From sequence record NC_061443.1: 64,000 bases of DNA; one strand, 5' to 3'. Below are positions 20,348 through 52,126 of this stretch, piece after piece; the first letter of the stretch is position 1; the number at the start of each line of letters is the position of its first letter. Both the position numbers and the translations under genes were made by a program. Under the pieces are notes generated by a model that was not told the DNA's origin, made no database searches, and saw only the letters and a program-made list of their open reading frames with translations.

Positions 20348-21094
20348 TTACATTCGAAGCTCGGCGGCAGTACGTTCGCCTTTCTTAGCAGCAGCGGCAA
20401 TCTCTGCGTCAGTCGCGTCTTTGGTAGCCAGCAATTTGATGACGTTTTGAATGGAACGCAACTCACCAAGATGAATCTGAACTTTCTTGACCTTTTTCAA
20501 ATGGTCGCCGATGAAGGTCATCAGCCAGCCTTTCTGCTGCATGACAACAGCTACTTCCAGTTTCTTATACTGGAAAGAGAACTGCTTGCCAGAAGCATGT
20601 AAGAACTGACCCGCTCCTGCTACTGGTTCAACCGCACGAATGAAATCCAGTGCGTAGTCCTGAGCGTTTTGACGACGCAAGGAAGAGAAGGCAGGAGAGA
20701 ATGTAGTTGTGTTGACTACAGGCTTGATGCTTTTACTTGCGCGTACGGGCTTTCCCACTGTGGCATTCGCAGCCTCAGGTTTGACCTTGATTGCACGAAG
20801 CGCGTTGATGGTAGCCACCAGCGTTTTCGCTTTATACAGGTTCTTGATTGCAGTCACGGCGTTCTTACCCGCAGCTTTCTTGGCGAAGGCTGTAGTGGCG
20901 TCAGTGTCTTTCAGGATATCGAGAACGGTTTCGAGCTTGGACGTGTCCAACTCTTTAATCTTCGTCAGTTCGTCGATGCGTTTAATCAGAACTTTGGCGT
21001 TCTTGCCGAAGAGGATATCAGCGTTCGCCACCTGAGCTTTAGTCGCGGCAGAGATAGACACAACTGCACCGCTATTCATTGTCATGTTGTACAT
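20348..21094 (-). CDS. Basic Lys/Ala-rich protein with N-terminal VSISA tag (putative internal head protein)
   Basis: MYNMTMNSGAVVSISAATK; K/A-rich; AAGGAAC RBS. Confidence 0.6.
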   Translation of the reverse strand: MYNMTMNSGAVVSISAATKAQVANADILFGKNAKVLIKRIDELTKIKELDTSKLETVLDILKDTDATTAFAKKAAGKNAVTAIKNLYKAKTLVATINALRAIKVKPEAANATVGKPVRASKSIKPVVNTTTFSPAFSSLRRQNAQDYALDFIRAVEPVAGAGQFLHASGKQFSFQYKKLEVAVVMQQKGWLMTFIGDHLKKVKKVQIHLGELRSIQNVIKLLATKDATDAEIAAAAKKGERTAAELRM

Positions 21095-29252: not shown

Positions 29253-30062
29253 TTACGCAGAGGCGGAGAAGATCTGTACCGTCTTCTCAAGTCCGGCTTG
29301 ATATGATTGTTCCACATCTTTGGCCGAACGACTGATAATCTGTTTTGTAGCGTTACCTGCTGCGGCAATTAATTCAACAGGCAGATTCTTTTTGTTCCAC
29401 GCATTAATCTGGTGGAAGACGCTAACGAGAATGGTACCAGCAGACTCTGCGAATGGTCCCAGTACTTCCGCATTAAGAATCTCTGCGAGCTGGCCGACGT
29501 CACGCAGCGCACGAAGGTCAGCAATGATTTCACGCATCTGGTCATAGAGTTTCATCAGTGCGTAGATATCACGGCTCTGTTTCTTTTTCAGGTAAAGCAG
29601 TTCACACTCACGCGCCATAGCCTGACACTGCTTGAACATGGTCATGTATTCTTGAATCTGATCGTTCTCTTGTTTGATAACGTCAGGAATATCAGCCATT
29701 ACCTCCATCAACTGGCCTTCAAGCGCAGCAACATCCGTGCCTGTACGTGTTTTGTCTTTCTTCTTCTTTTTCTTGATTACTTCAACTGCGTTTTCTTTCT
29801 TCTTCTTCTTTTTCTTCTTCGGCTTTTCGTCGATAGAAGCAACTGCCTTTTGAGTGCTGGCGATATCAGCGTAGAGTTCGGTTGGGTCGAGGACTCCGGG
29901 CATGATATCTTTTGATGGGTCACGCTTTTTCTTCTTCTTAACTTTCACGCCTTTGCTAACTGTCTTAGCTTTAACGGCAGTGGTCTTGGCTTTCACTTTC
30001 GCTTTGCTTTTCTTTGCCGGTTGCGCGTGTGAGCCAATGTCATCCAAGCTTATGGCAGCCAT
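29253..30062 (-). CDS. Hypothetical protein, Lys-rich N-terminus (poly-K runs) and helical C-terminus
   Basis: KKKKK runs; 269 aa ORF. Confidence 0.65.
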   Translation of the reverse strand: MAAISLDDIGSHAQPAKKSKAKVKAKTTAVKAKTVSKGVKVKKKKKRDPSKDIMPGVLDPTELYADIASTQKAVASIDEKPKKKKKKKKENAVEVIKKKKKKDKTRTGTDVAALEGQLMEVMADIPDVIKQENDQIQEYMTMFKQCQAMARECELLYLKKKQSRDIYALMKLYDQMREIIADLRALRDVGQLAEILNAEVLGPFAESAGTILVSVFHQINAWNKKNLPVELIAAAGNATKQIISRSAKDVEQSYQAGLEKTVQIFSASA

Positions 30063-32134: not shown

Positions 32135-33241
32135 TCAGTCCGCCTCAGTGAGTCCCAGACACTCAATCAAATTGCGTAGCTGGTCGTTGTACCCACCTTC
32201 GATTAGCGCTCTCGCCATAGCGACGTGGTTAGAGTTCGACATGCGCACAATCTTAGCCTGATACTCAGGAACGTTTTGCATGTTCTGACTCAGGTTGTAG
32301 AAGTAACTGCGCACGAAGTTCGTTCGTTCCACGTTGCTTGCTTCCATATCGCTTGTGTCCTGTGTAGGAGTCAGCAACAGGTAGAGGGCAGCAAGCAGTT
32401 CAGGACTCTGATCCACTAAGGGCGAAGCAAGAGAAGCAGCGAACTTCATCAAGCCTTTCGCAACGAAGTCAACCACAGTCTTGTTCAGATACGCCGTACC
32501 CGCTTTGCCTACGTTAGGCAGATACAGGACAGGCAGTATGTAGATACAGAAGTACAGCGGAAAGTCTTTACGCATCACGTCGGGGATAAGCATCTCCGAG
32601 TAGTCTTTCCAGATGTTCACGTTGAAGTGCCATTCATCGTAAGGCACGGTACGCATCAGGTTCGACACCGCTAAGTCTTTCACTTGGTTCGCCTGCGATG
32701 CAAGATCGCGAGCGCTCTGCGAAGGAGTCAGTGACGAACTCGACACAAGTTGAACGTAATTGCGAGTGACTGCGCCTACAGTGTTGTAGATTACGTTCAG
32801 CATTTCAACGCCGTTACCATTCAGGCCGAAGATAACAGAACGAGGAAGACCGATAGTGATGTACTCGTTGTTATTGTCCACGCCCCACAAGCGCCAGTAG
32901 CGCCCGCGTCCAAGTTGAGTCATCGGCTGCGGGAGAATACGGTTGGCGCGAGGTTTCAGGCAGAACGTGAAACAGATACCGCTGTCAATCATGATCACTG
33001 AATCATCAGGACGATTCGAATAACCCATCGACATATCGTTGTCTGTACTGTACACGTTCACCAGAGTGAAGTTCTGAGCCTTTGTGAAAGGCATCTGCGC
33101 TTCAATCAAATAGCCGAGGACTTGTCGCAGGATAGTATCGAGCACATAAGGAGAAGCGGAACGCATTTGCTGCGGACGATACTGACCGCTATACGTGTTC
33201 TCCTTGAATGTGCGATCTACCTTGAAGTGCGTCAACGCCAT
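32135..33241 (-). CDS. Hypothetical protein, probably virion structural
   Basis: 368 aa ORF in an operon downstream of a CTAATTT motif. Confidence 0.6.
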   Translation of the reverse strand: MALTHFKVDRTFKENTYSGQYRPQQMRSASPYVLDTILRQVLGYLIEAQMPFTKAQNFTLVNVYSTDNDMSMGYSNRPDDSVIMIDSGICFTFCLKPRANRILPQPMTQLGRGRYWRLWGVDNNNEYITIGLPRSVIFGLNGNGVEMLNVIYNTVGAVTRNYVQLVSSSSLTPSQSARDLASQANQVKDLAVSNLMRTVPYDEWHFNVNIWKDYSEMLIPDVMRKDFPLYFCIYILPVLYLPNVGKAGTAYLNKTVVDFVAKGLMKFAASLASPLVDQSPELLAALYLLLTPTQDTSDMEASNVERTNFVRSYFYNLSQNMQNVPEYQAKIVRMSNSNHVAMARALIEGGYNDQLRNLIECLGLTEAD

Positions 33242-34536
33242 TACTTAACCGATTGTTTGAGCAAACGTTTCTGCTGCGGATTCAGACCCATCACGTCGGA
33301 GATTTCATCAATCTTACGCAGAGTCAATACGCCTTTAGCAGTGCCGCCGGAGCCAGTCAGGCTGATCTTAACCAGCTCGCGTCCGCTACGTCCACGAACG
33401 ACCTGATGGATAACGCTGTTCTTACCGCCACGTCCAGCACGAAGTACAGTAGACGCCATGCCCAGGATTTCAGTGATAGCTTCTTTCTTCTCGGTAGGGC
33501 TAAGGCCAGGCACCAGACGAACGTACAGGCTATCGTTCTGCACACGGACGCTATCGAAGATCTCTTTCTTACGACCGCGAATATCGTGTTGAGCATTACC
33601 CAGCTGGGTAGTGTCGCGCAGGTTCTGAGTTGAGCGATTGATTGGCTTACGTTCGCTGTAGTTCAGGAAGCCGTCAACAGCCATAAGCTGGTTGATAGTA
33701 CGCTTCATTTCTGGAGCAGTAGCAATAAGACGACCCATCGGGAAGCTACCCGGAACCTTCTCGTCAACGAGTGACGTCAGGAAGTTTTCGCTGATGCCAG
33801 TTGCTACCGCGATCGTGGTAGACAGCACCATTGCGTAGTTCGGGTAGTGCAGGCCTTCTGAGTTCACGAAGTTATCAATGAACACATAGGTCTGGAAGCA
33901 GATAGGGTCAGTGCCAGACGCGATGAAGGTACGGGTACGAATCTTCGAATAGTCTTCTTTATTCAGAATCTTCGACAGGTAGTTGGCGATGGTTGCAGCC
34001 AGCTTGGTGTGTTCCTTAGGAGCGCCGTTCTTGACGTCGATGCTCATAAGTTTAACCAGACGTTGCTGCTGGGTCTTCGCCTGTTCGATGACGCTTAACA
34101 GAGACTTAGCGGCTGCGTTCTGATCTTTGAATGCGCTGAAAGTCTTGCTGCTAAGAATCTGATATGCAACAGCCAGCTCGCCAATCGCTTGGCTCAGTTG
34201 GCTTACCTGATTGTTATACTGCGCTTTACTGCGGACGTCAGTGATATCAATCTTAGACAGGTCGATAACCTGATTCAGGTCAATCGCTTTGGCCTGTTTG
34301 CCTTTGATTGAGCCTTCGAGATCAGACAGCTCAACAGCTTTAGGGCTGGCGCTGACCGACAGAAGTTTCTTTGGAATAGTGACTGAGGTGGCTTTAGCGA
34401 TAACTTTGTCGAGTACGTTACGGAACTCTTTCGCTGTACGCGCACCGCGTAACGCAGTCATATTCCCAGAGCTATAGTCAACAGATGCGCTGATGCTGCT
34501 AACTTCATTGTTTTTGGCAGTCTTAGCCATGATCAT
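33241..34536 (-). CDS. Putative internal head/structural protein with SISAS and SVSAS sites
   Basis: MAKTAKNNEVSSISASVD, LLSVSASPK; CTAATTT motif at 34569-34575. Confidence 0.55.
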   Translation of the reverse strand: MIMAKTAKNNEVSSISASVDYSSGNMTALRGARTAKEFRNVLDKVIAKATSVTIPKKLLSVSASPKAVELSDLEGSIKGKQAKAIDLNQVIDLSKIDITDVRSKAQYNNQVSQLSQAIGELAVAYQILSSKTFSAFKDQNAAAKSLLSVIEQAKTQQQRLVKLMSIDVKNGAPKEHTKLAATIANYLSKILNKEDYSKIRTRTFIASGTDPICFQTYVFIDNFVNSEGLHYPNYAMVLSTTIAVATGISENFLTSLVDEKVPGSFPMGRLIATAPEMKRTINQLMAVDGFLNYSERKPINRSTQNLRDTTQLGNAQHDIRGRKKEIFDSVRVQNDSLYVRLVPGLSPTEKKEAITEILGMASTVLRAGRGGKNSVIHQVVRGRSGRELVKISLTGSGGTAKGVLTLRKIDEISDVMGLNPQQKRLLKQSVK

Positions 34537-34568: not shown

Positions 34569-34575
34569 AAATTAG
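34569..34575 (-). promoter_or_regulatory. CTAATTT motif
   Basis: Intergenic, before 34536. Confidence 0.6.
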
Positions 34576-34642: not shown

Positions 34643-34672
34643 AAAAAGGGGCAGCCGAAGCCACCCCTTTTT
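34643..34672 (-). terminator. Rho-independent terminator after the H1-like gene
   Basis: Minus strand AAAAAGGGGTGGCTTCGGCTGCCCCTTTTT. Confidence 0.85.
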
Positions 34673-34702: not shown

Positions 34703-35395
34703 TTAGACTACCACTTTACCTTTTGCTTTAGTCTTGGTCGCTTTTTTAGCGCCAGTTTTCTGAGCAGCGGTACCTTTGTGATGAACGGCTTTAGCAGTAG
34801 TCTGCTTACCGTTTTTCAGACGTGGCAGTGGTTTCAGCTTAGGCTTAACCAGAGTCACGGCCTTCGGTGCTACTTTCGGAGTCACCAGCTTACCGTCTTT
34901 GATGCCAGGCTTACGCGCTTTACGTGCAGCCATGCGAGCTTTCTGTTTAGCGATCAGGTTTTTGTAACCAGCTTTCTGTTTCGCAGCCAGGTTGCTCTGA
35001 GCAACTTTCTGACGGGACAGCAGCAGTTTACGAACTTTGTCCTGAGAAACTTTGGTAGCTTTCAGGCCAGCCTGATACTTAGCCAGACGCTCTTTCAGAC
35101 GTTGCTCGATAGACTTCGCTTTGCCTTTTGCTTTCTGCTTACGCAGGTGAGTGGCGCGCTCGCCGTCGAACTTTTTGTCAGCAGCGGTTTTCTTAGCAGC
35201 GGCTTTCTTCGGCTTAGCAGCAGCAGCCTTAGGTGCAGCAGCTTTTTTCGCTTTAGGAGCTTTAGCAGCCTTTGGCGCTTTAGCTTTTTTAGCAGCAGGC
35301 TTTTTAGCGGCAGCTTTAGGTGCTTTAGCTTTCTTAGCCTTGGAGCCGCCTTTAACCGGGTCGGTCGGGGAAGTCAGTTTGCGTTTTACGGCCAT
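34703..35395 (-). CDS. Histone H1/Hc-like Lys/Ala/Pro-rich DNA-binding protein
   Basis: KKAKAPKAAAKKPAAKKAKAPKAAKAPKAKKAAAPK repeats; very few acidic residues; own promoter motif and terminator. Confidence 0.8.
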   Translation of the reverse strand: MAVKRKLTSPTDPVKGGSKAKKAKAPKAAAKKPAAKKAKAPKAAKAPKAKKAAAPKAAAAKPKKAAAKKTAADKKFDGERATHLRKQKAKGKAKSIEQRLKERLAKYQAGLKATKVSQDKVRKLLLSRQKVAQSNLAAKQKAGYKNLIAKQKARMAARKARKPGIKDGKLVTPKVAPKAVTLVKPKLKPLPRLKNGKQTTAKAVHHKGTAAQKTGAKKATKTKAKGKVVV

Positions 35396-35465
35396 GATTA
35401 TATCCTCAAGTTACAATTGAACTTTCGTCCTTAGGGACATTAAAGTTTTTGAAATCAGCAAGTAA

Positions 35466-35472
35466 AAATTAG
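35466..35472 (-). promoter_or_regulatory. CTAATTT motif upstream of the H1-like gene
   Basis: Intergenic. Confidence 0.6.
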
Positions 35473-35514
35473 TATAATCTCTCCAGGAATCCTGAGGAAA
35501 TTTCCTAAACATTT

Positions 35515-36588
35515 TTACATAGCAGTATACCCTATTTCAGATAACACCGCGTTAAGTTCTTTGCGAGCACTCACCCGCAAAGACTTTTTAATTCCAGATG
35601 CCTTCAGGTAATCCTTTAGGCCATCACGTGGGTCAATATCCGCAAGTGTTAACTCGCTAACATCAACTGTATCTATATTATCGAGATCGACACGTTTATT
35701 CGTGGAATTAATTTGGGAAATATTTGGGACGCGAGTACGAATATCTGCTGGAATCGACACGGTATCTTTGACGATGACACGGTAGCGAATCGCTGGGTTT
35801 ACCTCAAGGCGTGACCAATCCTTTTGATTCTCAATCATAACTGTTTCGAGTCTAAAGCCAGGCTTACTATCCACAAACTTCCGCTTAACCACCAGCTCCT
35901 TATTCTTGTATGCAGCGCGGATATGTATGAATCCTTTCGGCAATGCTTCCCCAAACGTTTTCTGGTAGGGTGACCCACAATACTCGAAGCGTTTCTTCTC
36001 AAGCACCTGAGCCAGATGGATGTGACCACTAATCGTGTAGTCACGTGGGTCAACTTTAATATCGTGCTTCGCTTTGAGAGGGCGACCGTTATCCCCCAAT
36101 GCGCCTACAGCTTCAACATGACAGAAGTTCAGGCACGGCTTCTTGTGCTTGATACTCTCTTTCGCAGGGTGTGGCAGGAAGTTCACAACGATACCGTCAA
36201 TCTCTACCTGTTCTGGTCTGAGATAGATGTGCAACGATTTGAGGAAGTCCCACTCGCAGAATGTTTTGATAAGGTCCATGCTGGTGTTAGACATATCAGC
36301 CCAGTCATGGTTGCCGCCACAGTACCATGTGTCGATAACACCTTCGTACTTGAGGAAGAACTGGAGCAGCTTGCGCTTTGTCTCGTCGTCCATCTTAAAC
36401 TTGTCAGTGATATCACCAGGAACGAAGATGTGACGTATGCCATGCTCAACAGCGTACTGATAGATGCGGTCGATCGTTTCCAGTTGACGGTCAACGTGGT
36501 CTACAGGAAAATGATTAGCCAATCCTTCGAAGTGCCAGTCCGCAGTCACGAGGGCTTCAAGGAAGGCCGCTACTTTGTTCTTTTTCAT
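35515..36588 (-). CDS. sbcD: SbcD/Mre11 (T4 gp47-like) metallophosphoesterase nuclease
   Basis: TADWH, VPGDITD, GGNHD, FCH, ISGHIH, YCGSP.Q..F.E...KG. Confidence 0.9.
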   Translation of the reverse strand: MKKNKVAAFLEALVTADWHFEGLANHFPVDHVDRQLETIDRIYQYAVEHGIRHIFVPGDITDKFKMDDETKRKLLQFFLKYEGVIDTWYCGGNHDWADMSNTSMDLIKTFCEWDFLKSLHIYLRPEQVEIDGIVVNFLPHPAKESIKHKKPCLNFCHVEAVGALGDNGRPLKAKHDIKVDPRDYTISGHIHLAQVLEKKRFEYCGSPYQKTFGEALPKGFIHIRAAYKNKELVVKRKFVDSKPGFRLETVMIENQKDWSRLEVNPAIRYRVIVKDTVSIPADIRTRVPNISQINSTNKRVDLDNIDTVDVSELTLADIDPRDGLKDYLKASGIKKSLRVSARKELNAVLSEIGYTAM

Positions 36589-36617
36589 TAGTGTAATCCA
36601 CAGGTTTCAATGTCTGC

Positions 36618-36626
36618 TATTTACAG
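36618..36626 (-). promoter_or_regulatory. CTGTAAATA motif upstream of sbcD
   Basis: Exact copy immediately after a terminator. Confidence 0.7.
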
Positions 36627-36655
36627 AAAAATGGGCACCCTAAGGCACCCATTTG
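36627..36655 (-). terminator. Rho-independent terminator
   Basis: Minus strand AAATGGGTGCCTTAGGGTGCCCATTTTT. Confidence 0.75.
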
Positions 36656-36657
36656 GA

Positions 36658-38547
36658 TTATTTTCTGGCTTTCATTTTCTCCCTGTGGGCTTTGGACTTA
36701 GCTCGCATCTCAGTGACTCTCTCGATAGCATCCACTTCGACAAGTTCCATAGTACGCTCGATAATCTGCTCGGTCATTTGAGCAAGAGTGCCGTTCGTGT
36801 CCACCAAGAAAGCCTCGCCGTCACCTGACAGGTCAATCGCGCTAGGGAAGAGTTCCTCAACGGCGACTTGCACTAGATGACCATAGTCAATACGGTGTGC
36901 CAGTGTGTCAATTTCAGTCTTATTCAACTTGAGCTTTTTATTGGATAGAGTATCGTGCAGTCTAGGACGAATAGACTCACGGTCATCTACGCGCAAATAC
37001 TTATAACCATCAAATACCATCTTGGCTGCTCTATAGTAGTTGGCGTCCACTCTGTCTTTATGTTGCTCCAAGCTGTGCAGAGTAGCAACGGAGCACTTAG
37101 GATTCTGCAAGGCGAGAGAGCCTATTGCAGGAGTAAGCACGTAAGTCTTATACTCTCTACCGCCTTTCGTACCAAATTCCTCTTCGACGTAACGTGTCAT
37201 AATGCCTGCGGTGTTAATACGCGAAGCAGTGTACCAGAACAAAGACTCTGGATTGCTGGTATATTTAACGAGATTCCAGATCTCACTTGGTGCTTTAGGT
37301 AAGGTCCCCAGCACTGTATCACTATTGGCAACAGAGTACAGTTCGGCGTCGGCAAAATACGTAGACACAAAGCTATCTCGGCGTTCATTGGGCAGAGAGC
37401 GCAGAAACATATCCATTGCTCTCGGACGACCGCTGGTTGCTTCCCAAACATTTTTCAGTGTCTCAGTATCGCCCGCATATTGGGTCTGGATAGCAGAGAA
37501 GAACTGAGGCAGATCGTCATACTTACCGTTGCCTATTAACTCACGAACACAGGTGCGTTGAAACTCAGGCGTGCCCCATTTGCGTTTAGCCAGCATGGTG
37601 GCCATAACAGGGAAGCGCTCTAGGTAGTCAACAACTACCGCTTCTGCGTTCTCTGTATCTTTGCTCGCTACTATGCCGTCGATGAATTTATTAACATCGT
37701 TGTTCATCAAGGGTGCTTCAAGGTCATAATCAAACACACCAGCACGGCGATCTTCATACAGCTTGGAGTGGAGTTCGAACACACCTTTTCGTTCGGTTGT
37801 TGCTATGAATGGGTTGATATGTTCGTTCAGCCATTCCTGTAGCGTATGAATGAAAGGCATTGTAGAGTCTGGGTAGGCAAAGTCCACCAGATACAGAGCA
37901 TTCACCTTTTCAGAGCCTACAACGCGATCACCTACTTTCGTCTTACCCTTCTGGAAGTAGGGCTTGACTAGAGCACGAGCGACAGGTTTATTGATGTTCT
38001 TATCTTTAGGGTCAATCAGATAAGAGATCAGTGTACCGTTGGCAATATCCTGCTTGACGAACTTCTTATTCGCGCCGCCTTTCAAATTCATGCAACTAAC
38101 CCAACCTCGGTCCGTACTCATGCCCGCGATATCATACGGGTGCATTGAGATACAAATAAGTTGATGGTTACGTGAGGCATTAGCTATTGCCTTGCGCTGC
38201 GGGTCAGAGTCAAACATTTTCTTGAGCGCAGCGTCTTTCGCAAGGTATTTACCGATCTTAACAATACGGCCATGCGTGTCTTTGCCTGTGCCTGCGATAT
38301 AGTCCACCAACACAATGTCTTTTTCCATCAGTGCATCGACGATCTGAATCGGCGGCTTCACGTTTTGGACGATGTTCTTAATCACCGCATCTGTCTTGGC
38401 GTCGATATAAATACGCATTGCCTTGTGGCCTTTCTTACCGCTAATCTTTTCGAACAGTGCGAGTAGCGCAGGGTTAGGCTTCCATCCTTTTCTGTATTTG
38501 CGATACTGAGAAGGAGGTAGCGCAGACATACTTACCATTAATTTCAT
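36658..38547 (-). CDS. Hypothetical 629 aa protein with N-terminal VSMSA tag (putative packaged protein)
   Basis: MKLMVSMSALP; conserved-looking block HPYDIAGMST.RGW.SCM; CTAATTT motif at 38579-38585. Confidence 0.65.
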   Translation of the reverse strand: MKLMVSMSALPPSQYRKYRKGWKPNPALLALFEKISGKKGHKAMRIYIDAKTDAVIKNIVQNVKPPIQIVDALMEKDIVLVDYIAGTGKDTHGRIVKIGKYLAKDAALKKMFDSDPQRKAIANASRNHQLICISMHPYDIAGMSTDRGWVSCMNLKGGANKKFVKQDIANGTLISYLIDPKDKNINKPVARALVKPYFQKGKTKVGDRVVGSEKVNALYLVDFAYPDSTMPFIHTLQEWLNEHINPFIATTERKGVFELHSKLYEDRRAGVFDYDLEAPLMNNDVNKFIDGIVASKDTENAEAVVVDYLERFPVMATMLAKRKWGTPEFQRTCVRELIGNGKYDDLPQFFSAIQTQYAGDTETLKNVWEATSGRPRAMDMFLRSLPNERRDSFVSTYFADAELYSVANSDTVLGTLPKAPSEIWNLVKYTSNPESLFWYTASRINTAGIMTRYVEEEFGTKGGREYKTYVLTPAIGSLALQNPKCSVATLHSLEQHKDRVDANYYRAAKMVFDGYKYLRVDDRESIRPRLHDTLSNKKLKLNKTEIDTLAHRIDYGHLVQVAVEELFPSAIDLSGDGEAFLVDTNGTLAQMTEQIIERTMELVEVDAIERVTEMRAKSKAHREKMKARK

Positions 38548-38578
38548 GATGTTCTCTTTGTTCTGAATGTCGTACTAA

Positions 38579-38585
38579 AAATTAG
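38579..38585 (-). promoter_or_regulatory. CTAATTT motif
   Basis: Intergenic, before 38547. Confidence 0.6.
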
Positions 38586-38607
38586 TGTGGAAAGTAAAAA
38601 CGCCCCG

Positions 38608-39126
38608 TTAGGAGCGTTTGTTTTGTTCATTGAATCTCTGCCAATCTTTCCACCAGTGCTCGATGGGTTTGCCATTCTTGTACGCATAGTCGATACAGTT
38701 CTGCGTGCCAGACGGTGCACCGCAGCAGAGTGCAACTAGACGGTCAGTGTTATCCACCATGAAGTGATTGCGCTTGTTCAACGCAAATACTTCTTGGCCA
38801 TCCATGTGAACCCAATCTTCTTTCGAAGTAACAATATGGACTTCATGGCTCTTGTTCAACAGACCATCAAGTTCAAACACACTCGATATCTTCCACAGTT
38901 TGTTAAAGCCAGGAAAAGGAAGACAGGACACGACTCTGTGTCCTTGCTCAATAGCAGCGGTGGCGATAGCCATGTCAAACCCTAGAGCGCAGCCCACCCA
39001 TATTTCGGTGTCTGTCTCAAGGCGCAGCAATCGTCTATGAGCAAAAGTATAGAGGCGTCGTTTTGCCTCAGGGCTAAAGCCACCTAGATACTGTGGACGA
39101 TGGCCTGTAAAGGATAGTTTCTCCAT
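38608..39126 (-). CDS. YpsA/DUF1273-type SLOG family nucleotide-binding protein
   Basis: SFTGHRP, GCALGFD...A..A, LPF..F...W, RNHFMVDN.D.LVA...G..SGT.NCI.YA...GK. Confidence 0.82.
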   Translation of the reverse strand: MEKLSFTGHRPQYLGGFSPEAKRRLYTFAHRRLLRLETDTEIWVGCALGFDMAIATAAIEQGHRVVSCLPFPGFNKLWKISSVFELDGLLNKSHEVHIVTSKEDWVHMDGQEVFALNKRNHFMVDNTDRLVALCCGAPSGTQNCIDYAYKNGKPIEHWWKDWQRFNEQNKRS

Positions 39127-39132
39127 GCGCTG

Positions 39133-39141
39133 TATTTACAG
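39133..39141 (-). promoter_or_regulatory. CTGTAAATA motif 6 nt before the SLOG gene ATG
   Basis: Exact copy. Confidence 0.6.
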
Positions 39142-40005
39142 CATTAATACCTTCTGCGACATAGAGAAGTCTACAGGATATAGTTGACTTGGGATGCAGT
39201 TGTCTTCAACCGAGTAGTCTTCTCCTTTCTTCAAGCGTACAAGCAATCCAGAGTAGGGCAGACAGGCGTCAGACAAGTTAATAGTCTCGTCGTCCACCAG
39301 CTTAGACTTGATGCGAAGTCCTCTGGCTTCGGTTGTGGCTGCATTGGTGTAGGCAATCGAAGGGCCGTAGCCAGTATCAGAAATAGAAAAAGAGGTTGGC
39401 CATGAGGCGTGAGTGTAGTCACTCGTTACAGTGAGAGTGTTATTCTCACCATACGCAAAAGTACCACCCGAAGGAGAAGATGGTGGTGTGTAGTACCCCA
39501 ACGCATTCACGCTTGCTACATCATCCGTTTTAGTTCTGTAGCTATATCCAATAAACACGGCGTAGGTGCGAGCCGCAGATATAGCAGAACGCACACCAAT
39601 CATAGGCATTGAGGCATCACGCGATCCATTAAGTCTGCTGGGAAACAGTGTGACATACTGGAACGATGTGTTGGAAGAACCATATAGTCCAGTTAGATTC
39701 GGGACAGAGTGCTGTGACCACGATCTGTTTGTCTGTCGAGCCAAGGCAGCCAATAGAGCCACAGAGCTTCCAGATGTAATACGAGCAAGCTCCGTCAGAT
39801 AGTACACAGAATCTTTCTGACCAGAAACTATCATGGTCCTACGATTCTGTCCTAACGTGGTTCGGGCCTCACGCAGCATAAGACCCAAAGATCTATCATC
39901 GGTTGGCGATAACAGGTCTACGTTATCCTTGACACGGTCGAAGAAAAACATGTCAGGTGAGGCTGCGTCTGACCATGAGTTTGCTGGTGCCGCTATGTAT
40001 TGCAT
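39136..40005 (-). CDS. MQY-family paralogue 1 (putative fibre/virion protein)
   Basis: MQYIA...MFFFD, ARTTLG, C-terminal DETINLS shared with 40421..41248 and 45256..46140. Confidence 0.55.
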   Translation of the reverse strand: MQYIAAPANSWSDAASPDMFFFDRVKDNVDLLSPTDDRSLGLMLREARTTLGQNRRTMIVSGQKDSVYYLTELARITSGSSVALLAALARQTNRSWSQHSVPNLTGLYGSSNTSFQYVTLFPSRLNGSRDASMPMIGVRSAISAARTYAVFIGYSYRTKTDDVASVNALGYYTPPSSPSGGTFAYGENNTLTVTSDYTHASWPTSFSISDTGYGPSIAYTNAATTEARGLRIKSKLVDDETINLSDACLPYSGLLVRLKKGEDYSVEDNCIPSQLYPVDFSMSQKVLML

Positions 40006-40045
40006 ATGATATTCCTTTATTTAGCACATCCTTGTGCTACCAGAC

Positions 40046-40411
40046 TCAAGCCACTACTTCAAGTTCACGATCACCAGATGCCCAAACGAGTTCACGAATG
40101 TTTCGTGGCATGATGATACAACCGCTCGATGCAGTGCCCGGCGCTTTGATGCTATCACCGTGCATCTGAAATGCAGAGCGACCAAACATCACGTTTTCTT
40201 TTGCAGGGGTTAAGTCCATCGCATATGGACCTGTCTTCGCGCTGGTGCGAGGAGCATTCAGCGTGTAGTGGCCCACAGGCAAAGGTCCCATTCCCACGAT
40301 GTTCTGGCTGTCGTGTTTGTTCTTGTGCTCACCTTTACCGGCATAGCCAGTAGCGACAAGTTTACCTGCTGCGTTATACAGGCGACCAGTTGATTGTTCG
40401 TACTTCCACAT
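40046..40411 (-). CDS. Tlde1/DUF2778-like L,D-transpeptidase-fold protein
   Basis: GY.G.G...N.......GP.P.G.Y, GRS.FQMHGD......ASSGCI carries the H-x(n)-C catalytic motif of the YkuD/Tlde1 fold. Confidence 0.8.
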   Translation of the reverse strand: MWKYEQSTGRLYNAAGKLVATGYAGKGEHKNKHDSQNIVGMGPLPVGHYTLNAPRTSAKTGPYAMDLTPAKENVMFGRSAFQMHGDSIKAPGTASSGCIIMPRNIRELVWASGDRELEVVA

Positions 40412-40420
40412 ATATGCTCC

Positions 40421-41248
40421 TTATAGCTCTGTGTGGTTTTTGGGGAAATCAATGTACGGGCGTGTGCCCGGTTCAAGATTCGCATCAGTTATAAAATCTA
40501 CATCTGCGGTCAATCGCATAAAGACATTATCTGCCATGGCCATTATTGCATGACTCAGATTGATGGCCTCATCCACTTGCGTGAGGTTCTCACCAAGTGC
40601 AGTGTAAGGAGTAGGTCCAGAGTTTTGATATGGACGGTTTGTACCATTGGACGACTCGCTGGATATCTGCGTCATACAGTCAATGAATCGCACATCAGGT
40701 GTGATGCCCGCAAACGCAGGACTGATTGTATTGTATCTGGACACGTATGAAGTAGACCACGACTTGCCTGTAAGTGTCTGACCGTCAGACAGTAGATAAC
40801 TGACATAGATGGATCGTCCCATGGAGGTTTCTACCTGCCATGAAGGATAGTTAAGAGTCTCAACGTCACCAGGATTTAAAACAGATACTCGGTCTTGAGG
40901 CTGATTGGTCCAATATCGAGTAGGCCCTTGTCTATAGTCTTCTCCTCCATTAGATGTATGATGGTGGATGGTACCGACATTGCGCGAAGCCGTTGTGATA
41001 GTTGGTGCATCAGCGTAAGCACCAGTACCGTTCTTGGCGTACTTCAAAAATGTGAGGAAGTAGTTTTCGCCTAAACGTCCTCGGACAGGATTGAGTTGAT
41101 TGGCTGTACCTAAGACCGTACGCGCTTGACGCAACGTATCGTCGATGGCGTCTAAGGTAAATTCAGGAAGGTCGTCTTGGTCATCAAAGAACAGGACGGC
41201 TGGATGCACCGCTTCGTTTAGAGATGCGAAACTGGATAAATATTGCAT
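40421..41248 (-). CDS. MQY-family paralogue 2 (start corrected to MQYLSS at 41248)
   Basis: MQYL...VLFFD, ARTVLG.ANQLNPV.G..G.NYF.TF.KYA, DEAINLS, LEPGTRP. Confidence 0.55.
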   Translation of the reverse strand: MQYLSSFASLNEAVHPAVLFFDDQDDLPEFTLDAIDDTLRQARTVLGTANQLNPVRGRLGENYFLTFLKYAKNGTGAYADAPTITTASRNVGTIHHHTSNGGEDYRQGPTRYWTNQPQDRVSVLNPGDVETLNYPSWQVETSMGRSIYVSYLLSDGQTLTGKSWSTSYVSRYNTISPAFAGITPDVRFIDCMTQISSESSNGTNRPYQNSGPTPYTALGENLTQVDEAINLSHAIMAMADNVFMRLTADVDFITDANLEPGTRPYIDFPKNHTEL

Positions 41249-41330
41249 GTTATATACCTTGGTTTTTATTGATGTACCACGGCATAGCACAAAAGGGCCT
41301 ACACCTCTCGATGCAAGCCCTTTGGAAGTG

Positions 41331-41468
41331 TCAGACTATGATTGTCTTGATCACGTTACGGTTCTTCTTTGGGTCGAACCATACTTCTTCAATAATCTTG
41401 CCCATGCCGAAGTTGATCATCTGCACCGTACGTCGTGAGACAAGTTGCAGACGTTTCTTATGGAACAT
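41331..41468 (-). CDS. Small hypothetical protein, 45 aa (below the ORF-track cutoff)
   Basis: GGAG RBS; MFHKKRLQLVSRRTVQMINFGMGKIIEEVWFDPKKNRNVIKTIIV*. Confidence 0.5.
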   Translation of the reverse strand: MFHKKRLQLVSRRTVQMINFGMGKIIEEVWFDPKKNRNVIKTIIV

Positions 41469-41470
41469 GA

Positions 41471-41980
41471 TTACTCCTTAATCATTTTGACGCGCGTGTG
41501 ATCGAAGATGCCGAACGTAGGCACGTCATGGTTTTGACCTTCATTGCCTTTGATAGAGTCGTACCCAGCGAGGTTCAGTATCTTACTGATCTCGGTGTAC
41601 TCGTCCCACCACATGTAGACACGTTTGTGTCTACTGTCAGGAATGAGTTTGTTCAACTTATCAAGGCGAGCCACTAAGGTCAATGCTTCGTCGCGGCCAA
41701 CACGCTTATCCTGAAACGCTTCCATGATAAGTTTCTTGACTCGACTATAAATCTCAGCGAACTTAACCTCAGTCCAGAGAGAACGGAAGTTCAAGCTGGC
41801 ATAGCGTCCAGGGTCCGCGTGAAATTTGTAGAGGCGCCCGTCTTCCGCATACAGTTCAGCATACGCACGATCTGGAGTTACCCATGTCATGTGTTGCTTC
41901 TTCGCATGTTCATCTGACCAGTCTTCTGCAAGACCGCGATAGTAGATTGTGGGCGCACTCAGGCTGACGAAGACTTCCAT
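41471..41980 (-). CDS. ADP-ribosyltransferase-fold-like protein with VSLSA tag (start corrected to 41980)
   Basis: TAATG coupling to the upstream stop; YYRG, WVTPDRAYAELYA, GYDSI...E.....TFGIF resemble ART strands beta1, beta2 and beta5. Confidence 0.45.
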   Translation of the reverse strand: MEVFVSLSAPTIYYRGLAEDWSDEHAKKQHMTWVTPDRAYAELYAEDGRLYKFHADPGRYASLNFRSLWTEVKFAEIYSRVKKLIMEAFQDKRVGRDEALTLVARLDKLNKLIPDSRHKRVYMWWDEYTEISKILNLAGYDSIKGNEGQNHDVPTFGIFDHTRVKMIKE

Positions 41981-43026
41981 TAACGACCCATGATACCTTT
42001 CTGCCACGCTACCTGTGCGTCCATACGATTAGGCTTCTCTAACTTGCTAAGAGCTTTTACCGCACCGCGCATCTGCTTACGAGCAGTAGCTTCTGGGATA
42101 GCAGGCTGAGAACCGCCGCCATTGCCGCCGAAGTTTGCGTAGAGTTTCCATCGACCGTCAGGTTCTTTCGACATACGGAAACTTGCTGTGCCGTGTTTGT
42201 ATTCGAAAGAGTTGCCTGTTGCATTGATCTTACCCCGAGACACACCATCTTTGGTGGTCATGGTTTTGATCAGGCTCTGGAGTTTCGGCGAAGGGTCTTT
42301 ACCTGCAACACGTACAGATGAAGCTTTCTTACCTGTGAGCATTTCGGTGCGTTTGGCTTTCGCTTCTTTCGCTTTCGCTGGAGAATGCGCACCTGCTACG
42401 ATGTTCTTGTTACGGATGATAGGAGCTTTAGCGTTCTTACGTTCCGTGTCTGTCATACGGACTTTAGGTTTCACGACAGGTGTTTTCTTCGCTTTAGTGC
42501 CTACCGCATCGAACGCAGCTTCTTTCAGGAACTTAGGCTTGAACGTACCGCGCTTGCCAGTTACGCCGAACTCAGTCAGCTTGGTGCTGCGGATTGCTTT
42601 CAGAGCTTTCTCTGCACCAACACCAGTTTTGATATCAGCAGCAGACAGCGGCAGATTCAACCCACCCAGACCGTGCGCCTTAGCAGTTTTGTTTGCTTCA
42701 CGCAGTTCTGCTTTAGCGGATTTGAGATCAGCAGAGGATTTCGCTTTCTCTGCCTTACGAGTGGCCATCAGCTTGGTACGCTTATCGCCCCGAGGTAGTT
42801 GCTTCGCTTTGGTTGCCGCAGTGTTTGCTTTGATGGAAGCAGTGATGCCAGCTATCGCAGACGCTTTAGCTTTCTTCAAGTGACCAACAACAGCCTGCAA
42901 CTCACCTTTCTTGGCAGAGTTAACCACAAGCGTAGTTGCGCCACCGACTTTAGCGATCTTGTACGAAGGAGCTTTTGCGGATTCAGAAGCCACCACTTCT
43001 GTCAGATTGATTTTAATCAGAGACAT
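41980..43026 (-). CDS. Highly basic Lys/Ala-rich protein with ASESA tag
   Basis: MSLIKINLTEVVASESAKAPSYK; paralogous N-terminus to 43051..43689. Confidence 0.7.
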   Translation of the reverse strand: MSLIKINLTEVVASESAKAPSYKIAKVGGATTLVVNSAKKGELQAVVGHLKKAKASAIAGITASIKANTAATKAKQLPRGDKRTKLMATRKAEKAKSSADLKSAKAELREANKTAKAHGLGGLNLPLSAADIKTGVGAEKALKAIRSTKLTEFGVTGKRGTFKPKFLKEAAFDAVGTKAKKTPVVKPKVRMTDTERKNAKAPIIRNKNIVAGAHSPAKAKEAKAKRTEMLTGKKASSVRVAGKDPSPKLQSLIKTMTTKDGVSRGKINATGNSFEYKHGTASFRMSKEPDGRWKLYANFGGNGGGSQPAIPEATARKQMRGAVKALSKLEKPNRMDAQVAWQKGIMGR

Positions 43027-43050
43027 AGCTTATATCCTGTGAGAATTTTG

Positions 43051-43689
43051 TTAGTAGCCTTCGCGACTACGGAATGGATCGCGGCGACCCGCCTTTAGAC
43101 TTGCAAGTCCAGCACCTCGGCTCTCCTTCTTCGCTGCGCTGATTGCGTCAAACTTAGAATCAGATACGAATTTAACACCGAAAGATCCTGTACGTCCTGT
43201 AACAGTGAACTTATTGGACTTGCGGGCTTTAACTCTACCTACAGCAGTACCGAATGCAGGAGCTTGGTCGGATACTGTTTTTTCATTTAGCTCAGGGGCC
43301 AACGCAGACAGTCCACCTTTCTTCAACTCCGCACGAGCATTCCTCAAACCTTCACGAAACTCTTTCGATTTGGCCGAGGCCAGCTCACGTTGCTCTTTTG
43401 CCTGAGCGCGTAACGTCTTCGATTTCTGCTTGTTCGCATCTGTGGCATTCTTAGTAAGCAACTTACCAGACTGCATTAAAAGTTTGGCTGCCTTTGTTTT
43501 TGCGTCGAGGTGCGCGATCATCGAGGTGCGCACACCCTTCATAATATTCGCCACTCCCTGTACGACAGATTTCTTTGAAGTAGGAACAACAATCGTAGAC
43601 ACACGATTCACTACTACGAATTTATAGCTTGGTTTCTTAGCAGATTCGGAAGCAATTGCGGACGCAAGAGCAATCTTAATCATCGCCAT
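43051..43689 (-). CDS. Highly basic Lys/Ala-rich protein with ASESA tag (paralogue of the previous gene)
   Basis: ASESAKKPSYK; VTGRTGSFGVKFVSDSKFDA matches VTGKRGTFKPKFLKEAAFDA. Confidence 0.7.
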   Translation of the reverse strand: MAMIKIALASAIASESAKKPSYKFVVVNRVSTIVVPTSKKSVVQGVANIMKGVRTSMIAHLDAKTKAAKLLMQSGKLLTKNATDANKQKSKTLRAQAKEQRELASAKSKEFREGLRNARAELKKGGLSALAPELNEKTVSDQAPAFGTAVGRVKARKSNKFTVTGRTGSFGVKFVSDSKFDAISAAKKESRGAGLASLKAGRRDPFRSREGY

Positions 43690-43698: not shown

Positions 43699-44304
43699 TT
43701 ATACCAACGCGCGGCCTGGGAGATCAAAGTTTTTACCCGCAGAGTAATCGCCCAGCGCGGCATACAGGGAATTACGCAGCATCGACTGGATGATATCGGA
43801 GTTATGTGCAGAGGCGTCTTTGAATGCGACCTCAATAGAATCCGTTCTTGGATTCACTACAGCATAACGCAACGGGCAGACGGTTTGTGCTTCACACCAT
43901 GCGTCGATTCGCGGCTGCAAGTCAGGCGTAAGGGGAATGCGAAAATCAGCGAGAGCAAAGATGACGCTCTGAATCGGCGGAGGCGCCGACTGCGACATAT
44001 ACTTGCCATTCGGACTAAGACGTTCCATGGCCATGGAAGCATCATAGATTGACTGATACCCTTCACCAACGGTTTTGATATCAGAGAGTTTGAAGCTATG
44101 CGTTGTCAGGCCTTTACGAATGAGCTTGGCGATCTTGAGATCGTAATCACCAGAATCATCAGTAGCGAAGCAGACGAACGCGTAGAAAGAGATACCTTCG
44201 GTCTCACGTAGCAGTCGATGGTCTAATACGCGAAAGCCCACGACACTCGTAAGTGCCTGGGCTGTTACCTGTGGTCCCTTAGAAAGAGAGACAAAGATTT
44301 GCAT
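43699..44304 (-). CDS. Hypothetical protein with VSLSK tag and internal SQSA site
   Basis: MQIFVSLSKGP; YMSQSAPPP midway. Confidence 0.65.
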   Translation of the reverse strand: MQIFVSLSKGPQVTAQALTSVVGFRVLDHRLLRETEGISFYAFVCFATDDSGDYDLKIAKLIRKGLTTHSFKLSDIKTVGEGYQSIYDASMAMERLSPNGKYMSQSAPPPIQSVIFALADFRIPLTPDLQPRIDAWCEAQTVCPLRYAVVNPRTDSIEVAFKDASAHNSDIIQSMLRNSLYAALGDYSAGKNFDLPGRALV

Positions 44305-50726: not shown

Positions 50727-51011
50727 TTAGGCAGCCCCTGCGAATACTTTACGCACCCCATTATCCAGATAGTGGTCCGCATAGAAAGGTCCGTTCTCAT
50801 TTTCAATACCAATACGACGGCAGAGTTGGCGACGCAAGCGCTTAGGCCAAACCATCTCGTCTTCCAGCAAATGGATAACAGCAGGCATAGCTTCCAGTTG
50901 AGTCATTGTCAGGTCACGAATCTTGTCGTCAATCCTGCAGAGTTCAGCGTAGTCCTGTTCAGGTGTAGGCACAGAACGTTCAGGCTTAGAAAGGTCTACT
51001 GTGATTTCCAT
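50727..51011 (-). CDS. Hypothetical protein
   Basis: 94 aa; MEITVDLSK resembles the MEIFVSLSK tag; followed by a hairpin/U tract at about 50710-50739. Confidence 0.6.
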   Translation of the reverse strand: MEITVDLSKPERSVPTPEQDYAELCRIDDKIRDLTMTQLEAMPAVIHLLEDEMVWPKRLRRQLCRRIGIENENGPFYADHYLDNGVRKVFAGAA

Positions 51012-51457
51012 CAGTATCTCCGTGGCTTCTTGATTTTCTTAATCGTGGACTTCGGACGCTTGATTGCCCGCAGTGCTTTACGTGCTTCGATAATCTTCTT
51101 GGACAGCTCTGAGCGTTGCTTCTTGACGGCATCCGTGTCTTGCTCTGTACCTTTCAGTTTATCCAGACGATTCCACTCATTGACCAAACGATCAACCACA
51201 CTGGCACGGGATACACGCTGTTGGTTAGTACGTACAATGTCCTGTTGCTTCTTTACGGAGTCACGGGTGTTGTTCACTTCGTCACGCGCAGACTTCACAC
51301 CTTTCGTGTCACCGTCAGATTGCTTGTCGTTCAGTTTCTTACGGGCAACCTGTGAACGTCTTTGAGCACCCTTGAGATCATCTTTCGAGTTCTCCAGGCT
51401 GACCTTTGTGTCTTCGAGTGGGCTGGTACGCGCACTCAAACTGATAAGTATTTTCAT
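51011..51457 (-). CDS. Basic coiled-coil protein with ISLSA tag
   Basis: MKILISLSART; K/R-rich C-terminus. Confidence 0.65.
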   Translation of the reverse strand: MKILISLSARTSPLEDTKVSLENSKDDLKGAQRRSQVARKKLNDKQSDGDTKGVKSARDEVNNTRDSVKKQQDIVRTNQQRVSRASVVDRLVNEWNRLDKLKGTEQDTDAVKKQRSELSKKIIEARKALRAIKRPKSTIKKIKKPRRY

Positions 51458-51589: not shown

Positions 51590-52126
51590 TCATGCGGATT
51601 GAAGTTGAATGATTTCTTCGTCTTCGATATCCGCGCCAGACCACGAACGAATCACGGATGCGTTACCACGATTGCCTGTCAACATTGTCTTAACTGCTGG
51701 ACGTGCTTCGCGTTCTGCATAGTGGTCGATAAGAGCTTTGTCATTAGCGAACCACAAAATGGAGTGACCACCTTTAGGGCAGACCAGGAATTGTGCTGGG
51801 TGCTGAGGTACGTTCAGCGTCATGTAGAAGTCGCCTGCGCCTTCAGGACCCATCATAGGCATAGGCTTCATAATCTGCTGGAAGTCTTTTGCATCTTTCA
51901 GACGCACATCACCCAACAACCAAACAGCACCTTCTTCACCCTCACGCACGGCGCTCAATGTGCCTTTACGCGAAGTGATAGATCCGAATACGTCTTGATC
52001 GAATCGAGCCAGCCCAAAGATAAGCGATGCGAGTTTCTTCAAATCAGGAGTAGTGCATGGACTGTCGATTTTAGCCATGCCCTCAGACCCGACTGTAATC
52101 TTCGATAATGAAACAAAGATTTCCAT
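51590..52126 (-). CDS. Hypothetical protein with VSLSK tag
   Basis: MEIFVSLSKIT; CTAATTT motif at 52163-52169. Confidence 0.65.
   Translation of the reverse strand: MEIFVSLSKITVGSEGMAKIDSPCTTPDLKKLASLIFGLARFDQDVFGSITSRKGTLSAVREGEEGAVWLLGDVRLKDAKDFQQIMKPMPMMGPEGAGDFYMTLNVPQHPAQFLVCPKGGHSILWFANDKALIDHYAEREARPAVKTMLTGNRGNASVIRSWSGADIEDEEIIQLQSA

Follow-up and report, generated by a model that had tools for sequence, protein, structure and literature searches.

The Erwinia jumbo phage pEa_SNUABM_2 (Alexandravirus, PaBG/Lu11 group; 265-kb genome) encodes an extremely basic protein, gp186, whose gene forms a single-gene unit with a structural-gene promoter motif and a strong terminator. Both gp186 and the SNF2-family ATPase gp177 probably travel in the head alongside the DNA, since the PaBG protein encoded at the position of gp186 and the PaBG ortholog of gp177 were found in purified virions. 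The window analyzed is a stretch of 64,000 nucleotides of this genome (NC_061443.1), in which all ORFs of an earlier sequence-only reading were found at their coordinates on the minus strand (Table 1). The core observation of that reading, namely a series of basic-protein genes, a promoter motif and terminator for gp186 and the paralogy of gp195 and gp196, was confirmed. Its interpretation fared unevenly, as packaging was supported indirectly through PaBG, while a true histone H1 relationship and a genome-wide coat were not sustained.

The DNA in tailed-phage heads is usually regarded as essentially naked, the textbook exception being the small internal proteins of T4. What is added here is a polycation that is conserved and apparently abundant and bears H1-like or AT-hook-like repeats; an SNF2 ATPase of 220 kDa that, by analogy with PaBG, would lie beside it in the particles of a whole jumbo-phage group; and a putative Ser-x-Ser loading leader marking further candidate cargo. 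The word "histone" is absent from a 2021 comparative jumbo-phage overview and from a 2026 review. The respective phages of Erwinia, Dickeya and Pseudomonas offer a culturable system for the sharing of a capsid by protein and DNA, charge-driven loading of untagged proteins and a packaged chromatin-type motor at the start of infection.

Table 1. Features of the window discussed in the text
Feature	Position	Strand	Description	Basis
gp175	20348..21094	-	248 aa, pI 10.0; V-V-S-I-S-A tag	
gp177	21715..27567	-	1,950-aa SNF2-family ATPase; N-terminal I-S-A-S-A tag	SNF2-rel_dom + Helicase_C; phrog_21391
gp181	29253..30062	-	Poly-Lys N-terminal half, conserved C-terminal helical domain; untagged; near head-tail connector gene	
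gp185	33241..34530	-	429 aa; V-S-S-I-S-A tag; just downstream of gp186; own class B motif at 34567-34575	
Intrinsic terminator after gp186	34643..34667	-	GC-rich stem, UUCG loop, U-run	RNA fold -24.4 kcal/mol, z = -7.05
gp186	34703..35395	-	H1-like basic protein, 230 aa	Translation, composition, family alignment A1, AF2 model
Class B promoter-like motif ACTAATTTTTAC	35464..35472	-	69-77 nt upstream of gp186 start codon	Motif sharing and conservation
gp187	35515..36588	-	SbcD-like nuclease, conserved upstream neighbor of gp186 position; class A promoter at 36618-36626	Metallophos_2 match
gp188	36658..38547	-	629 aa; M-V-S-M-S-A tag; class B motif at 38577-38585	
gp194	41471..41980	-	Small protein; F-V-S-L-S leader	
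gp195	41980..43026	-	Tagged basic modular protein	Translation, paralogy, homologs, predicted structure
gp196	43051..43689	-	Shorter gp195 paralog; same leader and N-domain, no C-terminal domain	Paralogy
gp197	43699..44304	-	Small protein; M-Q-I-F-V-S-L-S leader	
gp209	51011..51457	-	148-aa charged helical protein, net +21; M-K-I-L-I-S-L-S leader	
gp210	51590..52126	-	Small protein; M-E-I-F-V-S-L-S leader; class B motif at 52161-52169	

Composition and transcription unit of gp186

No other ORF of the genome is as basic as gp186. Its charge density lies 3.8 SD above the mean, and it contains 27% Lys, 22% Ala, 6% Pro and 3% Asp plus Glu (net charge +66, pI 11.4). Alignment of the family revealed a conserved N-terminal peptide followed by variable K/A/P repeats (approximately residues 20-69), helices and a K/P-rich C-terminal tail. 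In the AF2 model, residues 1-69 have a pLDDT below 50, corresponding to a disordered K/A/P tail, and helices occupy residues 71-91, 96-160 and 210-225, together with two small hairpins. As modeled, gp186 thus has a disordered K/A/P tail, then a helix of 65 residues and another basic tail behind it, which bears out the H1-like, K/A/P-rich gene recognized in the sequence-only reading. Family members keep their length and their net charge (+49 to +68) while the repeat sequence drifts.

The tail of gp186 resembles those of linker histone H1 and the chlamydial proteins Hc1/Hc2 in being K/A/P-rich, disordered and strongly cationic, of the DNA-condensing kind, and this likeness is one of convergent composition. 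No Pfam match was obtained at E <= 0.1, including Linker_histone (PF00538) and Hc1 (PF07432), and neither a sequence nor a fold match was found in the PDB. In PHROGs the sole match was phrog_37424, and a profile search of 1.84 billion representative proteins returned only 25 matches, all of them family members of the same length. A true relationship to histone H1 was rejected on these grounds and because the winged-helix globular domain of linker histone H1 is missing from the AF2 model; membership in Hc1 was likewise rejected, given the lack of a Pfam match and a profile search confined to its own family.

The class B copy upstream of gp186 reads CTAATTTTT. Nine co-oriented matches to this motif were found in the window (2.9 expected), and it also precedes gp182, gp185, gp188, gp200, gp210, gp222, the scaffold gene gp142 and the sheath-like gp136, as well as both tail-sheath genes of PaBG. 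We infer late timing for class B because of the genes that it precedes. The promoter motif and terminator earlier attributed to gp186 are therefore both upheld. A second motif, class A (CTGTAAATA), gave 10 matches against 0.43 expected.

Counterparts in related phages and in PaBG particles

All PaBG/Lu11-group phages examined carry, in the slot after the SbcD gene, an equally basic protein of K/A/P or AT-hook-like type. The adjacency of this slot to SbcD is kept in PaBG, Lu11, HRDY3, NCTB and the enterobacterial clade, and the order SbcD, basic protein, gp185-like protein, gp184, connector and onward to the helicase in PaBG, Lu11 and NCTB, whose gp187 orthologs show 39-45% identity. The slot gene forms a unit of one gene with the class B motif in front of it in Y3, PaBG, Lu11, HRDY3, Yen9-02 and JA11; NCTB, in which no such motif was found, is the only exception among the phages checked. 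Equivalent hairpins follow the gene in the same six phages and in NCTB. The late-type promoter and terminator of the slot gene are accordingly conserved across eight lineages (NCTB without the promoter motif). The slot proteins PaBG gp191, Lu11_0110, NCTB_281 and that of HRDY3 (net charges +88, +97, +64 and +97, respectively) share with gp186 the gene slot, the extreme charge, the terminator and, except in NCTB, the promoter motif. In contrast to gp186, their repeats are C-terminal and their sequences cannot be aligned with it. Those of Lu11 and HRDY3 further differ in carrying AT-hook-like PGRPKK/GRGRPK repeats, and an AT-hook G-R-P core flanked by basic residues is absent from the gp186 sequence. 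In the Y3 record the gp186 ortholog is annotated as 'hypothetical' only. The genes of the H1-like slot protein and of the SNF2 ATPase both belong to the core set of the PaBG/Lu11 group.

SDS-PAGE and MALDI of CsCl-purified PaBG particles listed gp202 (221 kDa helicase) and gp191 (35.3 kDa, 'Unknown'), and the basic protein gp83 was also a virion band (PMC7412058). The key bands are thus already present in published data; by exact mass they were assigned to PaBG_00202 and PaBG_00191, and, as MALDI of gel bands, they report presence in particles rather than copy number or localization. gp202 is orthologous to gp177 over the full length (1,977 aa, 29% identity), gp83 has a leader of the gp195/gp196 type, and gp191 is a virion-associated K/A/P-repeat protein encoded in the same slot as gp186. 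Because gp186 and gp191 cannot be aligned, the two are equated by gene position, composition and regulation. A sticky polycation such as gp191 could co-purify with particles, though CsCl should strip loosely bound protein.

Tagged basic proteins and the SNF2 ATPase

Within their first 20 residues, 17 proteins carry a hydrophobic-x-S-x-S-small motif (2.3 expected, p = 4e-10), including gp177, gp175, gp195, gp196 and gp209; this Ser-x-Ser leader is absent from gp186 and gp181. gp195 and gp196 share 34% identity (E 2e-19), and the S-E-S residues of their leader are invariant in 18 homologs. gp195 comprises a leader ending in S-E-S (residues 1-16), a beta-hairpin, a helical hairpin (37-117), a disordered K/A/P linker (178-236) and a C-terminal alpha/beta domain, and its fold search gave no match above noise. 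The paralogy and tag proposed for this pair hold, but not its H1-like character, as the K/A-rich part is modeled as a folded helical hairpin. The supposed set of histone-H1-like proteins is in fact limited to gp186 alone; gp195, gp196, gp175 and gp209 are moderately basic (pI 10.0-10.7). Homologs of gp181 were found in PaBG (gp198, E 1e-15), Lu11 and NCTB. A PHROGs search returned only clade-specific families of unknown function and no homology to T4 IPI, IPII or IPIII.

These three T4 proteins are small and basic, enter the prohead core via a capsid-targeting sequence, are trimmed by the protease, retained and injected with the DNA. gp195, gp196 and gp209 resemble them in having a short conserved N-terminal leader; there is no sequence relation, and the leader ends here in Ser-x-Ser, whereas that of T4 ends after Glu. 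gp186 differs from the T4 proteins in its lack of a leader, its long K/A/P repeats and its 65-residue helix.

gp177 carries a SWI2/SNF2 ATPase core at residues 854-1388, with a Sulfolobus Rad54-like match. Within its 1,950 residues no further Pfam or NCBIfam domain was found, and no methyltransferase, effector or partner domain was recognized. The tagged SNF2 translocase of the sequence-only reading is corroborated, and the tag is retained in the Y3, PaBG and NCTB orthologs. P1 DarB is a packaged SNF2-type protein protecting incoming DNA, and T4 IPI and Alt are cited in the same study (PMC5512222). Like other 'polyvalent' SNF2 proteins that are packaged, DarB is a giant head-carried ATPase of this family (PMC5512222), and the gp177 ortholog is likewise a PaBG virion band. 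Unlike DarB-like proteins, gp177 has no detectable methyltransferase or effector domain but has a Ser-x-Ser leader. A polyvalent-protein domain, KMPT-N, is carried by gp150 of pEa_SNUABM_2.

Possible roles of gp186

By analogy with T4, the most likely role of the basic proteins is that of internal head proteins ejected with the DNA. For gp186 in particular, we give about even odds to a very basic DNA-binding protein that is made late and in abundance, comes to lie inside the head and leaves with the DNA. The earlier claim of packaging is supported indirectly, by the presence of PaBG gp191, gp202 and gp83 in purified virions and by a gp186 promoter motif shared with sheath and scaffold genes, that is, in a related phage or by motif. 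Lacking a leader, gp186 would probably enter the prohead through charge attraction to a hyper-acidic core of scaffold gp142, gp139 and gp150 (net charges -148, -30 and -61) with at least 14 S-x-S sites. The protease would cleave the core at many such sites, the acidic pieces would exit, and gp186 would stay behind to bind the DNA as it comes in. With a few hundred copies, neutralization would reach a few percent of the charge on the DNA, and a helix with a disordered chain should be thin enough to travel through the tail together with the DNA. gp195, gp196, gp209, gp175 and gp177 would be loaded separately through cleavable N-terminal leaders, in the manner of T4 internal proteins, and be ejected as cargo. 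As a counterpoint to packaging, the leader of these other candidate cargo proteins is missing from gp186.

The missing leader would suit a late, non-virion DNA organizer, which would condense the replicated DNA of the phage, or the nucleoid of the host, for example to present concatemers to the terminase, and whose PaBG counterpart would merely stick to capsids or leaked DNA. Histone-like proteins that phages encode and that act in the cytoplasm are well established (phi29 p6, SPO1 TF1), and the PaBG evidence consists of gel-band MALDI only. We nevertheless regard such an organizer as unlikely: CsCl banding should remove charge-bound protein, the gp191 band is Coomassie-visible, gp186 has the promoter class of structural genes, and the intracellular role could fall to another protein of the genome, one with K/A/E repeats whose gene follows replication-type promoter sites.

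The sequence-only reading had envisaged a chromatin-like shield on the packaged genome, which a co-packaged SNF2 protein would strip or reposition after injection, against restriction or CRISPR. The basic slot protein and the SNF2 ortholog of PaBG both occur in its virions and are encoded by group core genes, and packaged SNF2-type protection of incoming DNA has a precedent in P1 DarB (PMC5512222). Full neutralization, however, would take about 8,044 copies of gp186, or 196 MDa of protein against 172.5 MDa of DNA; a genome-wide coat is thus physically impossible and only sparse binding can occur. In addition, the genes of gp186 and gp177 lie 7 kb apart in differing upstream contexts, nothing ties the two proteins together, gp177 has no methyltransferase or other recognizable partner domain, and no defense phenotype is known. 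We therefore consider the shield quite improbable. We give equally little credence to a bolder possibility, in which PaBG/Lu11-group phages would package a real nucleoprotein, with hundreds of H1-like or AT-hook-like polycations on the genome and the co-packaged 220-kDa SNF2 motor working on the complex at or after ejection, pulling DNA in or clearing protein for transcription and shielding the genome from host nucleases.

Adenovirus core protein VII is basic, Ala/Arg-rich, made late, packaged with the viral dsDNA and enters the cell on the genome. The role proposed for gp186 inside the head would be similar in these respects; protein VII differs in belonging to a eukaryotic virus of another capsid lineage and in covering the whole genome, which is ruled out here by mass.

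Finally, the conserved slot directly after SbcD would fit an accessory factor of an SbcCD-type recombination nuclease, binding DNA ends or hairpins, but this is very improbable, as SbcD is under a replication-type class A promoter whereas gp186 has a class B promoter and a terminator to itself, SbcC is located elsewhere in the genome, head and neck genes adjoin the other side of the slot gene, and the PaBG slot protein was found in virions.

Composition and family of gp186

Erwinia phage pEa_SNUABM_2 (genus Alexandravirus; NC_061443.1, 265,442 bp) is the source of the window, which spans its bases 124001-188000. The phage is a jumbo myovirus of the PaBG/Lu11 ("Lupandier") group and not of the phiKZ group (PMC7412058). 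The sequence-only reading had singled out gp186 as an H1-like basic protein, and its charge density is indeed the highest among all ORFs of the genome (3.8 SD over the mean), so that the top of the list had been picked. Among proteins of at least 100 aa, gp186 is followed in basicity by a K/A/E-repeat protein encoded outside the window and then by gp209, gp195 and gp196. gp175 (pI 10.0), gp209 (pI 10.5) and the poly-Lys N-terminal half of gp181, which had been grouped with it, agree with their earlier descriptions, though all are much less extreme.

The resemblance of gp186 to H1 is one of composition alone. Pfam, whose families include Linker_histone and Hc1, gave no match at E <= 0.1, and neither did NCBIfam models or a profile comparison with PDB sequences. 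Among 1.84 billion representatives, profile searching recovered only 25 proteins, which are similar in length throughout, and a word search returned 29 clusters, every one from the phage clade of gp186 itself. The AlphaFold model begins with a disordered stretch (residues 1-69) and continues with helices 71-91 and 96-160 (pLDDT above 90), a pair of small hairpins and a final helix; a winged helix is absent, and fold searches recovered only the protein's own family. Membership of the H1 or Hc1 families was therefore rejected. Neither gp186 nor the first 790 residues of gp177, the SNF2-family ATPase, drew an informative match from the ESM Atlas.

The family alignment comprises a conserved N-terminal peptide, K/A/P repeats, a well-conserved core and a conserved K/P-rich C-terminus. 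Although the repeat stretch differs in length and sequence between members, they vary little in overall size (207-246 aa) or in net charge (+49 to +68), which points to selection on charge.

Gene neighbourhood and regulatory motifs

The region is part of a long run of minus-strand genes, in which those for replication and recombination are intermixed with head, neck and lysis genes. PaBG, Lu11 and NCTB share the order SbcD, basic protein, gp185-like, gp184, connector, gp182, gp181-like and HNH, and further on SNF2 helicase, lysozyme-like gene and PolA. In all three a polycation occupies the slot directly after the SbcD gene, the position of gp186 in pEa_SNUABM_2. The SbcD surroundings of HRDY3, a 313-kb Pseudomonas phage, likewise have, at the slot, a protein of 432 aa and net charge +97 that carries a GRGRPK motif, while the outgroups Motura and PhiXhv-15 lack a basic slot protein. 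gp186 could not be aligned with the slot proteins of PaBG, Lu11, NCTB and HRDY3, and neither BLASTP nor profile comparison detected homology between its family and PaBG gp191.

Features of the region and of related loci (window coordinates unless marked genome)
Feature	Position	Strand	Description
gp150	genome 115221-117083	minus	620 aa; about 7 kb before the window; Ser-x-Ser leader; class B promoter motif; KMPT-N domain (E 3e-17)
Class A sites	10975-62940	always co-oriented with genes	upstream of replication/recombination genes
Class B sites	12058-61941	always co-oriented with genes	upstream of structural and cargo genes
gp181	29253-30062	minus	poly-Lys N-terminal half
UUCG hairpins	34643-34667; genome 103415-103445, 121295-121325		GGGTGGC-UUCG-GCTGCCC, near-identical
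gp186	34703-35395	minus	230 aa; 27% Lys, 22% Ala, 6% Pro, 3% acidic; net +66; pI 11.4
gp190, gp192, gp200	39136-40005, 40421-41248, 45256-46140	minus	paralog family; start M-Q-Y-I/L
gp191 (pEa_SNUABM_2)	40046-40411	minus	Tlde1 / L,D-transpeptidase-like domain (E 2e-15)
gp195 C-terminal domain	41980-42300	minus	
Class A sites of K/A/E-repeat gene	genome 254064, 254121		upstream of the gene
K/A/E-repeat protein	genome 255203-255730	plus	175 aa; KAEKAAKPAKAEK-type repeats; acidic-Phe tail; about 67 kb past window end
PolA gp174, SbcD-like gp187, SbcC-like gp205, clamp loader gp211	minus-strand block	minus	replication and recombination
Connector gp183, endolysin gp199	minus-strand block	minus	head, neck and lysis
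PaBG gp191	slot		332 aa; net +88; AKKAATKAAKP-type repeats
Lu11_0110	slot		429 aa; net +97; PGRPKKTPAAA repeats
NCTB_281	slot		215 aa; net +64; KPRGK-type repeats

Two classes of promoter-like motif were distinguished. Class A, CTGTAAATA, has 10 copies in the window against 0.43 expected, all co-oriented, and is called "middle/late promoter" in the Lu11 annotation; the genes behind it include PolA, HNH, SbcD, the clamp loader and a second polymerase. Class B, CTAATTT plus two variable bases, occurs nine times in the window, where 2.9 copies are expected, and each time on the coding strand. It precedes gp182, gp185, gp186, gp188, gp200, gp210 and gp222 and, outside the window, the scaffold gp142, the sheath-like gp136 and gp150, and we infer that it is a "late" class. 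In PaBG it lies upstream of both tail-sheath genes and of gp191.

The promoter motif and terminator ascribed to gp186 were both recovered, the former being of class B and the latter a hairpin of -24.4 kcal/mol (z = -7). Upstream of the slot gene, class B is also found in Y3, Lu11, HRDY3, Yen9-02 and JA11, while a search upstream of the NCTB slot gene found none; behind the slot gene a strong terminator hairpin is present in Y3, PaBG, Lu11, HRDY3, Yen9-02, JA11 and also NCTB. By these motifs the slot gene is a conserved single-gene unit that, NCTB excepted, carries the promoter type of structural genes. With a simple sigma-70 scan, promoter-like sites were fewer than in shuffled sequence, and the gp186 terminator went undetected. 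UUCG hairpins such as those listed in the table recur behind many late genes, often with the ribosome-binding site of the next gene directly after them.

The gene for gp181 lies beside that of the connector. The C-terminal helical domain of gp181 is conserved and the protein is kept as PaBG gp198, Lu11_0103 and NCTB_276, which makes it a possible neck or DNA-end protein.

Tagged proteins

An N-terminal leader, hydrophobic-x-S-x-S-small, occurs within the first 20 residues of 17 proteins, against 2.3 expected from the motif's internal frequency (p = 4e-10). Ten of these proteins are encoded in the window (gp175, gp177, gp185, gp188, gp194, gp195, gp196, gp197, gp209 and gp210), and orthologs retain the motif, including the helicases of Y3, PaBG and NCTB. 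S-x-S recurs at least 14 times in the scaffold gp142 (net -148), and gp139 (net -30) and gp150 (net -61) are likewise acidic and motif-bearing. The KMPT-N domain of gp150 has been described in packaged "polyvalent" proteins. These patterns would fit a putative head-protease site doubling as a loading signal.

gp195 and gp196 are paralogs, as had been proposed (34% identity, E 2e-19), and their family (39 clusters) is confined to the clade of pEa_SNUABM_2. Its members consist of the leader, a conserved N-domain and a K/A/P linker; some end there and others add a C-terminal domain, of which there are at least three unrelated kinds, an architecture that looks like a carrier with exchangeable cargo. 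Within the leader S14 and S16 are invariant; in some members a second module is bounded by another S-E-S, and in Yoloswag two modules are joined by an internal leader copy. A confident helical hairpin (residues 37-117) takes up most of the K/A-rich sequence in the gp195 model, and these proteins are thus not H1-like tails. Of the proposed H1-like set, gp186 alone is H1-like.

Fold searches with gp195 gave generic helical bundles only, with nothing above noise; its C-terminal domain matched PsiB at Z 6.6 over 97 residues, which is within noise. PsiB is a conjugation-transferred RecA inhibitor, and the weak resemblance, which would fit an ejected effector, is only a lead. Paralogs gp190, gp192 and gp200 are interspersed among the tagged proteins. 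In the middle of the same cluster lies pEa_SNUABM_2 gp191, which may be an ejected enzyme acting on the cell wall.

Virion proteins and a proposed route into the head

Table 1 of the PaBG study reports 14 Coomassie-visible bands from CsCl-purified particles, including gp202 (221,161.95 Da, "RuvB helicase-like"), gp191 (35,272.92 Da, "Unknown"; found in several gel bands) and gp83 (35,127 Da, "Unknown") (PMC7412058). The masses computed for PaBG_00202 (221,159 Da) and PaBG_00191 (35,272.5 Da) agree with these values, so the gene mapping of gp202 and gp191 is secure. gp202 and gp177 are orthologous over their full length (29% identity, 1,977 residues, E = 0) and gp191 is the slot protein; counterparts of gp177 and gp186 are thus present in PaBG virions. 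PaBG gp83 is basic and K-rich, and its gene adjoins the scaffold gene. Its residues 1-17 resemble the gp195/gp196 leader (9/17 identical, E 0.025), and beyond them the sequences are unrelated.

The interpretation of these proteins as phage "chromatin" is partly supported, while the underlying observation is confirmed. A full coat is excluded by mass arithmetic: neutralising the 530,884 genome phosphates would take 8,044 copies of gp186, and these (196 MDa) outweigh the DNA (172.5 MDa). One thousand copies would neutralise 12%. We infer instead that gp186 would be synthesised late and in large amounts, that the acidic core would attract it into the prohead through its charge, and that it would remain once that core is cleaved and expelled; it would then bind the packaged DNA sparsely and be ejected with it. 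The tagged proteins, SNF2 ATPase included, would be loaded via their leaders. What is shown along this route is the composition, the conservation, the regulatory motifs and the occurrence of the PaBG counterparts in virions. Conceptually, the T4 internal-protein system comes closest, and the nearest analogue of gp186 as a packaged DNA-condensing polycation is adenovirus protein VII. H1-like genes of other phages have so far been a matter of speculation only (PMC12619734), and the word "histone" is absent from a 2021 comparative jumbo-phage overview and a 2026 review. The gp186 system is conserved, occurs in culturable phages and is open to direct testing.

In gp177 the SNF2 core spans approximately residues 800-1600, with no other domain recognisable in Pfam or NCBIfam. 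Packaged SNF2 proteins are known, such as P1 DarB and other "polyvalent" proteins (PMC5512222). Remodelling of gp186-DNA by gp177 is conceivable, though nothing in the analysis supports it. An intracellular DNA-organising role may be covered by the K/A/E-repeat protein, which would fit a separate, late, packaged role for gp186. Orthologs of gp177 (56% identity) and gp186 are also found in the Salmonella phage Sen-NF (PV359490.1, 108,537 bp), a record that looks like the partial genome of a jumbo phage from the PaBG/Lu11 group.
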